This document shows positions 42,044 to 43,309 of a DNA stretch of 64,000 nucleotides, piece after piece; the first letter of the stretch is position 1; each line of letters opens with the position of its first letter. Origin of the DNA: Sminthopsis crassicaudata. Taxonomy: Eukaryota. The stretch is from positions 184,037,238-184,101,237 of the forward strand of contig NC_133621.1 in assembly GCF_048593235.1 (NCBI RefSeq), written 5' to 3'. The position numbers and the translations under genes were made by a program. Below the pieces are notes generated by a model. The model was not told where the DNA came from and searched no databases. It was given only the letters and a program-made list of their open reading frames with translations.

Positions 42044-43309
42044 CTACTTAGTACATTTTAATAAGTCCAGATTGTTTTCTATAGCCCTAGCGACTTGTTG
42101 TAGTTTGTCTGCAACAGGTTCCATAGTCTTGAGAATTTCTTGGAGATTATCTGCAGCTGACATTGAGGGATTCATGGAGGTTTGACATTCCACCAGGTTG
42201 CTCAACTTCTCTAAGATATCTGTAGGTGTTAAAGCTGGGCATGGGCAGCAACTTGAAGAAGGTTTGGAAGGACAACAGGGTGGATCACAGGGATTATGTA
42301 GGTCAGTCAGACGTAGGCTCATAATTGAAGATTTCATCAGCTGCGAAAGCGCACATTCCATACATTCGAAGAAGTTGACATTTTTCAGCATAAGGATAAG
42401 TGGCAGACTTGCGCAGTCAGAAATAGCTGTTTCACATAATTTTTTTGTTGCATTTTTCAGACAGGGATTCAGACAGGGATCTATCTTCAAACAGGGAGGA
42501 CAGGGAGGACAGAGAGGGGGACAGAGGGGAGGACAGGGGGAACAGGGTTTACAGGGGTTACAGGGATTACAGGGGTTACAAGGGTTACAGGGGTTACAAG
42601 GGTTACAGGGGTTACAGGGGTCCAGCTTCAGACAGGGGGGACAGGGGTCCAGCTTCAGACAAGGAGGACAGGGAGGACAGGGAGGACAGAGGGGAGGACA
42701 GGGGGAACATGGTTTACAGGGGTTACAGGGGTCCAGCTTTATACAGGGGACACAGGGGCTACAGGGGTCCAGCTTTATACAGGGGGAACAGGGGTTACAG
42801 GGGTCCAGCTTCAGACAGGGGGGACAGGGAGGACAGGGGGGACAAGGGGAACAGGGGGAACAGGGGTTACAAGGGTTACAAGGGTTACAAGGGCTACAGG
42901 GGTCCAGCTTCAGACAGGATTCCATCTTCAGACAGGAGTCCACCTTCATACAGGGGTCTATCTTCAGACAGGGGTCTATCTTCAGACAGGGGTCCATCTT
43001 CAGACAGGGCTCTATCTTCAGACAGGGCTCCTTCACTGAGGTCATACTTATCTTCGAATACTGAGAGCAGCTCTCAGCTCTGTCAATATCACACTGGACC
43101 CTTCTCAAAGAACATACTACTTCTTCAAAATAATCCTTAACTGTTCCACTTTCATTCACAATGATACAAGGTATTTGGCAGCCCAGGTAATTGGTGAGTA
43201 ATTGAATAAAGTTATTTATGGAACAATTAAGTTTTAGTAAGCAATTGTAGAAAGTATTACCAGTCTGAATAAACCTGTCTTTATCCTTTTCTGACATCTG
43301 ACATGACAT
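42044..43309 (-). CDS. C12orf60: C12orf60 (DUF4533) orthologue, 421 aa, with a large internal Cys/Pro repeat insertion
   Basis: Syntenic position and orientation. Flanks match recalled human C12orf60: [10 protein letters not shown]~SEKDKERLIQ, KDYFEE~[22 protein letters not shown]~[32 protein letters not shown]~SAADLLEQIVKAMGPI. Acceptor tttgtttttcag opens the exon at 43333, 24 nt before the ATG. Confidence 0.9.
42455..43030 (-). repeat. Coding tandem repeat block (9-nt CXP and 18-nt CLK[LIM]DP units)
   Basis: aa 94-285 of the ORF; 49 Cys in 192 residues by manual count. Confidence 0.95.

Follow-up and report, generated by a model that had tools for sequence, protein, structure and literature searches.

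The window analysed here, a stretch of 64,000 nucleotides (nt) of the dunnart Sminthopsis crassicaudata (assembly GCF_048593235.1, contig NC_133621.1, positions 184,037,238 to 184,101,237 of the forward strand), carries a C12orf60 gene whose product contains a 192-residue Cys/Pro tandem-repeat array between the two conserved halves of the protein. The array is real, expressed, lineage-restricted, and traceable in origin, and it shares only the principle of C-x-P repeats with the sperm-tail proteins ODF1 of mammals and Mst(3)CGP of Drosophila.

Orthology of the gene and presence of the array in genome and mRNA

The coding sequence is a complete open reading frame (ORF) of 421 residues plus stop codon at 42044–43309 on the minus strand. 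It lies within one exon, and the gene caller of a public collection places a 421-residue product at the same site. In total, the protein contains 69 Cys and 71 Pro. The insert spans residues 94–285 (42455–43030) and consists of 192 residues with 49 Cys, 59 Pro, 34 C-x-P tripeptides, and no Gly, where x is N, S, P, K, or V. A preliminary description made from the sequence had assigned C12orf60-like ends and an insert of this extent and Cys content to the ORF, in exact agreement with the translation, the Pfam match, and the alignments. The 19-residue tripeptide string that it quoted starts at residue 138.

The protein matches Pfam DUF4533 (PF15047) with an E value of 1.2e-26 and a score of 94.1 bits (cut-off, 28.6). 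The match is divided into two stretches flanking the insert, and the C-terminal one covers residues 296–411 on profile positions 108–225. The N-terminal half (residues 1–93, 43031–43309) aligns to the marsupial orthologues, and the C-terminal half (residues 286–421, 42047–42454) is 67–72% identical to them. When both flanks are aligned with five marsupial C12orf60 proteins (wombat, 243 residues; koala, 244; tammar, 242; Dromiciops, 244; bilby, 244), the identity is 70–77% with a single gap of about 187 columns at the array site. Isoforms of 277 residues, with an N-terminal extension, and 264 residues occur in tammar and bilby, respectively.

The best sequence matches to the 421-residue protein are marsupial C12orf60 proteins, not the paralogue SMCO3. 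In a Foldseek search against the Swiss-Prot models, mouse, human (245 residues), and rat C12orf60 rank first over both halves (template modelling score by hit, 0.68–0.70), followed by SMCO3, which matches only the N-terminal half (residues 5–95). SMCO3 itself (225 residues) is intact at 47127–47804 on the plus strand, antisense within the C12orf60 intron, and matches DUF4533 with an E value of 1e-61. Since both proteins match this family, the two genes are nested paralogues, and the same layout is found at the tammar and bilby loci. Orthology to C12orf60, as originally proposed, is secure because Pfam, the fold match, and the SMCO3 synteny agree.

The dunnart protein thus shares with C12orf60 of other mammals (human Q5U649, 245 residues; marsupials, 242–244 residues) the helical fold of both halves, the single coding exon, and the SMCO3 nesting. 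It differs in the array, in place of which the other marsupials carry just the seed LEKDPCLKN. The usual length of the family (about 240–250 residues with a short linker) is exceeded by the array in the linker. The dunnart protein belongs to C12orf60/DUF4533 as a length variant, and the excess length is no ground for exclusion. The human protein had also been described as about 245 residues long and free of the repeat, which fits the top human match at that length and the family representatives without the insert.

The reality of the array was examined with Logan contigs and unitigs of an independent DNA run (X5) and three RNA-type runs (X9, X10, and X16) mapped over 41000–46999. The RNA runs cover only the region from 41785 or 41792 to 43336, and the depth is zero across the rest of the 6 kb. 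The signal is therefore spliced RNA and not contaminating DNA. An AATAAA polyadenylation signal is located on the minus strand at 41814–41809, 17–24 nt upstream of the contig ends at 41785 and 41792. At the other side, the contigs run 132–134 nt past 43336, and the first 30 letters of these loose ends map uniquely to 48766–48795. The intron between them (43337–48765, minus strand), which holds SMCO3 on the other strand, has a GTAAGT donor and a polypyrimidine-CAG acceptor. The splice sites and the polyadenylation signal show that the minus strand is transcribed. C12orf60 is a two-exon gene with the whole coding sequence in the last exon (41785–43336), together with a short 5′ leader and a 3′ untranslated region of about 255 nt. 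The upstream non-coding exon (48766–48899, minus strand) is at least about 134 nt long, its 5′ limit being estimated from the lengths of the loose ends. About 22 nt upstream of where the RNA contigs appear to begin (near 48899), the minus strand carries TATAAAAAAA at 48921–48912, a box that probably belongs to the promoter. Separately, the region 49272–49445 contains TATAAAAG and TGACATCA, the latter resembling a cyclic AMP response element, with a possible GTAAGT donor near 49167, and may be an alternative first exon.

The RNA contigs break inside the array at repeated 31-mers, yet they overlap as a complete tiling path with neither differences nor joints. Such tiling does test the structure of the array, because 562 of its 576 31-mers (98%) are unique and its longest exact repeat is 42 nt. 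Identical unitigs also tile the array in S2, an independent DNA sample (runs X5 and X6), where 0.93–0.97 of the array words are present. X5 represents a different haplotype, judging from 24 single-base differences and 12 indels against the reference over the 6-kb stretch. A search with the array alone found four further RNA-like runs (X7, X11, X33, and X34) of a 2023 study that hold 0.86–1.00 of its words. The only variant in RNA run X9 is A>G at 42461, a synonymous change of TGT to TGC at Cys283. The array is therefore present in the genome and kept in the mature mRNA. An assembly artefact, or removal of the repeat from the mRNA as an exitron so that the 421-residue protein is never made, is hardly credible: low-complexity arrays are often misassembled and the de Bruijn contigs do break here, but the array is covered without joints both in independent DNA and in RNA of several individuals, the X9, X10, and X16 contigs and the four further runs speak against splicing, and the refutations by artefact and by splicing that the preliminary description had envisaged fail.

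Layout, origin, and distribution of the array

Parsed by codons, the insert is composed of 13 hexapeptides of the form (L/I/M)-K-x-(D/E)-(P/S)-C, 31 x-P-C tripeptides, and four four-residue units (three PPLC and one LNPC). Tandem Repeats Finder detects an 18-nt array at 42896–43031 (7.6 copies, 88% matches) and a 9-nt array of about 41 copies at 42533–42903, besides higher-order periods of 36 and 72 nt. In terms of the codon table, the former is the LKxDPC sub-array and the latter is a mixed xPC array with interspersed 18-nt units, both read on the minus strand. A 16-residue motif block is found twice, and 42605–42646 is an exact 42-nt duplicate of 42788–42829. These two repeats point to later block duplications. 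The spacing of the Cys residues should be noted. The 27 Cys from position 96 to 204 share one register modulo 3, the following 16 likewise fall in one register, and a shift occurs only where a four-residue unit intervenes.

In the AlphaFold2 model, helices are found at residues 7–42, 57–80, 302–337, 362–376, and 385–419 with a predicted local distance difference test (pLDDT) value of about 70–85 (74–85 in the first two). Residues 82–289 have pLDDT values of 30–48 and no secondary structure. The model accordingly places a disordered spacer, the array, between the helical halves. A second, non-repetitive Cys/Pro patch with six Cys is seen in the translation and the orthologue alignment at residues 339–358 (42236–42295, minus strand). 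This patch falls in a putatively disordered loop (pLDDT below 50 for residues 340–362). Pfam detected only DUF4533 in the whole protein (E values up to 1) and no family in the insert alone (E values up to 10). The insert had no meaningful match in the ESM Atlas or in a sequence search of the PDB, and no solved structure of the DUF4533 family was found in the PDB. Two ORFs antisense to the gene, at 42198–43064 (288 residues) and 42445–43140 (231 residues) on the plus strand, encode Gly/Gln-rich and Arg/Gly/Tyr/Asp-rich sequences and are by-products of the repeat.

The origin of the array can be read from the orthologous exon DNA. In Dromiciops, koala, tammar, and bilby, the sequence at this site is ATG ACC TCT GTG TTG GAG AAA GAC CCC TGT CTA AAA AAT GCT, which encodes M-T-S-V-L-E-K-D-P-C-L-K-N-A. 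The LEKDPCLKN seed within it lies at the linker between the helical halves. The left border of the dunnart array is still recognisable as M-T-S-V-K-E-P-C, and the right border as L-K-N-A-T-K-K-L-C. The 18-nt unit CTG AAG NTN GAC CCC TGT corresponds to the ancestral D-P-C plus L-K read cyclically, and the 18-nt sub-array is nearest to the seed. The 9-nt unit AAC CCC TGT (N-P-C) is one transition away from GAC CCC TGT (D-P-C), and the remaining x codons (AGC, TCC, CCC/CCT, AAA, and GTC) are mostly single steps apart. These relationships indicate that the array expanded locally, through duplication of units that stem from the linker of the gene itself. In the proposed sequence of events, the seed would have been amplified in the dunnart lineage by unit duplication, most simply through replication slippage or unequal exchange. 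The 18-nt LKxDPC units would have come first, followed by the 9-nt half-unit xPC and finally by the 36- and 72-nt blocks, giving the 576-nt in-frame array. Copying of the insert from ODF1 or another gene is ruled out, as the units derive from the local ancestral motif, and the likeness to ODF1 is for the same reason convergent. The independent origin claimed for the repeat in the preliminary description is thus supported by the local DPC-LK seed. At the expansion site, bilby has DPCCPN where the other marsupials have DPCLKN, a small independent gain of Cys and Pro. An extra Thr beside the array site is common to dunnart and bilby (NATKK and NTAKK, respectively, versus NAKK).

The array is absent from six other C12orf60 proteins representing three marsupial orders, namely Peramelemorphia (bilby), Diprotodontia (koala, wombat, and tammar), and Microbiotheria (Dromiciops). 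An exhaustive profile search of 1.84 billion proteins gave 14 family representatives (61–315 residues), none of them with the insert. Word-indexed and exhaustive profile searches for repeat-bearing orthologues returned only repeat-free marsupial proteins, and no devil, antechinus, or opossum protein surfaced. At the DNA level, runs of related organism D (two samples from two studies) contain 0.29–0.30 of the sampled 31-mers of the array, and DNA of related organism B (four samples) contains 0.27. Since 27–30% of the exact 31-mers are present in B and D, the array is shared beyond one species. Metatranscriptomic RNA of organism B holds 0.27–0.28 of the words of a 2.4-kb query, about 0.43 of the exon's share, which suggests that B diverges from dunnart by a few per cent over the exon. 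Judging from these matches, the array arose after the dasyurid–bandicoot split and before dunnart (organism A) split from B and D.

One RNA run (X16) bears the label of organism B, although its contigs match the window at 100% identity throughout the exon. In view of the discrepancy with the other B runs, which spans X16, X19, X20, and X29–X32, the label of X16 may be wrong or may stand for more than one taxon. The exact SMCO3 product is also encoded on CM109185.1 of assembly GCA_048593235.1, where the locus matches the window without a difference over 20,678 nt, and the dunnart is a dasyurid. As for the relationships of the flanks, dunnart and bilby share five two-state derived characters, and any other pair shares at most two. 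A maximum-likelihood tree of the flanks did not resolve the position of dunnart.

Possible function of the array and alternative explanations

Neither an evident signal peptide nor a membrane segment is seen by eye at the N-terminus or in the remaining translation, and the thiols are therefore probably cytoplasmic, as in ODF1. A polyproline-II-like conformation has three residues per turn, and CxxC spacing occurs in many metal sites and in the thioredoxin active site. Every adjacent Cys pair of the array has this spacing (C-x-P-C). The array would be a disordered spacer, stiffened by its prolines, in which 49 thiols are arranged on a period-3 lattice, and if its conformation is polyproline-II-like, the Cys residues of each run would line one face. 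Such an arrangement would make the protein multivalent for thiol chemistry, through intermolecular disulfide cross-linking in the oxidised state or Zn2+ bridging in the reduced state, as proposed for the C-X-P tail of ODF1, and the DUF4533 helices would keep their ancestral role. Taken together with the gene model and the local origin, this reading is slightly more likely than not, and we give a selected thiol-based function of some kind a little under an even chance.

The C12orf60 flanks are evidently under purifying selection, as their ratio of nonsynonymous to synonymous substitution rates (dN/dS) is 0.25–0.39 against four marsupials. The variation among the units of the array should also be noted. 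In the 31 xPC units, the CC of the Pro codon and the TGT of the Cys codon are invariant, the third base of the Pro codon varies, and x takes eight codons for five amino acids. Judged by this pattern, Cys and Pro seem to be constrained.

Several observations weigh against a selected function of the array. First, both the polyproline-II geometry and the chemistry proposed for the thiols (disulfide or Zn) come from general knowledge. Second, the synonymous third base of Cys is invariant too: all 49 Cys codons in the array are TGT, the flanks having 13 TGT and 7 TGC, and Pro in the array is encoded by 42 CCC and 16 CCT. Such uniformity points to young or homogenised units, and the constancy of Cys and Pro may owe much to recency rather than selection. 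Third, the frame survives slippage without selection, since all units of the array are 9, 12, or 18 nt and any gain or loss of a unit keeps the frame automatically. The preliminary description took the intact frame as an argument for selection. The coding frame is indeed the only open one of the sense strand across the array, the other two having 16 and 19 stops, but the argument is weak for the reason just given. Fourth, no difference between the second individual (X5) and the reference exists within 41560–43783, but this 2.2-kb tract exceeds the exon on both sides and is not counted as evidence for selection. Variants are dense around it (for example, six within 41313–41559 and six within 45993–46064), and the tract may reflect colony identity by descent, a sweep, or chance instead of constraint on the exon. 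Finally, the raw count of Cys in the flanks is 21 in dunnart and 12–14 in the orthologues, but strict lineage-specific replacements to Cys number 2 of 23 in dunnart versus 3 of 21 in Dromiciops, no more than in bilby. Flank Cys enrichment as a sign of directional selection was dropped on this count. The case for selection on the array itself is suggestive only.

A neutral or nearly neutral coding minisatellite, in which a slippage-prone motif expanded in a disordered, poorly conserved linker and was merely tolerated, is on balance unlikely. The insertion site is in a disordered linker that is strongly different between eutherians and marsupials, the uniform TGT codons indicate a recent or concerted expansion, and the bilby DPCCPN at the same spot suggests a mutational hotspot. 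Besides the unit lengths, all three antisense frames are stop-free across the array, so that the low complexity itself avoids stops. On the other hand, at least two other taxa have kept an array of similar form, and the Cys residues are constant over 49 positions next to an x residue that takes five amino acids. The flanks remain in frame and under purifying selection, and 49 added free thiols in a cytoplasmic protein are unlikely to be without effect.

A more specific proposal is that the array has given C12orf60 a structural role in the sperm tail or midpiece, where the protein would be cross-linked by disulfides or zinc, perhaps within the midpiece fibre network, in convergence with ODF1. 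We regard this as improbable. Its appeal lies in the composition, which resembles that of the C-terminal domain of ODF1/HSPB10 and of the Drosophila CGP sperm-tail proteins, and in the probably cytoplasmic location of the thiols, as well as in the promoter, which would be of the TATA type and not a CpG island. C-X-P repeats are a C-terminal feature of ODF1, as the preliminary description had stated; they are length-polymorphic in 9-nt units, with a 27-bp deletion reported, and disulfide and Zn roles have been discussed for this domain (PMC8913478). Both proteins have C-X-P runs such as CSP and CNP in a probably cytoplasmic Cys-rich context, with 34 C-x-P in the dunnart insert. ODF1, however, has an alpha-crystallin domain followed by the C-terminal repeat, whereas the dunnart repeat is internal, several times longer, provided with LKxDPC hexapeptides, and derived from the gene's own sequence. 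The alpha-crystallin (small heat-shock protein) domain was not found in the Pfam scans of the dunnart protein and its insert described above, and the protein therefore does not belong to the ODF1/small heat-shock family.

The Mst(3)CGP proteins (Mst84Da-d and Mst87F) are defined by CGP repeats, again as had been stated, and share with the dunnart array tandem Cys-x-Pro tripeptides with repeated C-x-P-C spacing (PMC10645079). They are small, male-germline-specific, and nearly all Cys-Gly-Pro, whereas the dunnart insert lacks Gly, lies inside a helical protein, and is unrelated to them by descent. The absence of Gly and the different architecture show that the dunnart protein is not an Mst(3)CGP protein.

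Dasyurids are a family known for intense sperm competition. Planigale, of the same dasyurid subfamily, independently gained Cys in protamine P1, which shows that thiol-based sperm stabilisation has evolved in dasyurids (PMC13756071). This gain resembles the present case in being a lineage-specific increase of Cys in a dasyurid protein that is lacking in other marsupials (PMC13756071). It concerns another gene with a known sperm nuclear location and consists of a few point gains with no repeat expansion, and the parallel is thematic only.

The sites of expression speak against the sperm proposal. The transcript turns up in at least five studies, in a total of 14 or more RNA-type runs, and most of the positive runs are probably not testis. 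By study, exon-positive RNA-type runs number three in 2018, three in 2020, one in 2019, at least five small ones in 2023, and one in 2024. Some runs of these same studies contain none of the words of the exon, indicating that the expression is tissue-dependent. A multi-tissue dunnart transcriptome (2023 preprint) comprises 24 samples, of which one is testis and one is prostate, the rest being female tract, extra-embryonic membranes, liver, and eye (PMC11091235). A 2021 survey lists spleen and uterus as the public dunnart RNA-seq, and the 2018 dunnart transcriptome paper deals with uterus. The positive RNA studies are likely to be these published sets. If they are matched to the runs, most positive runs are not testis, because the sets hold one testis sample. 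Testis-only expression of dunnart C12orf60 is very unlikely, and the RNA points to expression in several tissues.

The literature searched gives neither a function nor a sperm association for C12orf60. The main text of a paper on the kangaroo sperm proteome makes no mention of the protein, nor do the dunnart uterus transcriptome paper and its supplement. Human C12orf60 is reported to be testis-enriched, which the literature searched did not confirm. The full form of the sperm proposal is that dasyurid C12orf60 was neofunctionalised, the de novo C-X-P array turning it into a thiol-cross-linked sperm component, for example of flagellar or midpiece accessory fibres, with expression in other tissues being secondary. 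We see only a slim chance for this.

Neighbouring features of the window and significance of the array

Other features of the window are as follows. The segment 50001–52000 has a GC content of 0.49 against a background of about 0.35, is CpG-island-like, and may be the WBP11 promoter. An ORF of 169 residues at 7794–8303 on the plus strand resembles by eye the C-terminal end of LINE-1 ORF2 and is a candidate for such a remnant. A 353-base run of N occupies 912–1264, and a TA-type microsatellite at about 4050–4110 reads IYIYIY in two frames.

The dunnart C12orf60 is a rare case in which the birth of a new protein module can be followed in the sequence itself, from the seed through the unit types to the final array. 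Within a gene that is otherwise conserved and constrained, a six-residue linker motif has given rise to a cysteine lattice of 192 residues, and the product converges on the C-X-P repeat of the sperm-tail proteins of mammals and flies. If the sperm proposal is true, C-X-P modules would have been invented for sperm tails three times independently, in ODF1, in Mst(3)CGP, and here. Should the array prove neutral, it would illustrate the amount of thiol-rich low complexity that is tolerable in a cytoplasmic protein. If it is functional, it would offer a natural test of what C-X-P repeats do and a handle on the uncharacterised DUF4533 family (C12orf60 and SMCO3) in an emerging laboratory marsupial.

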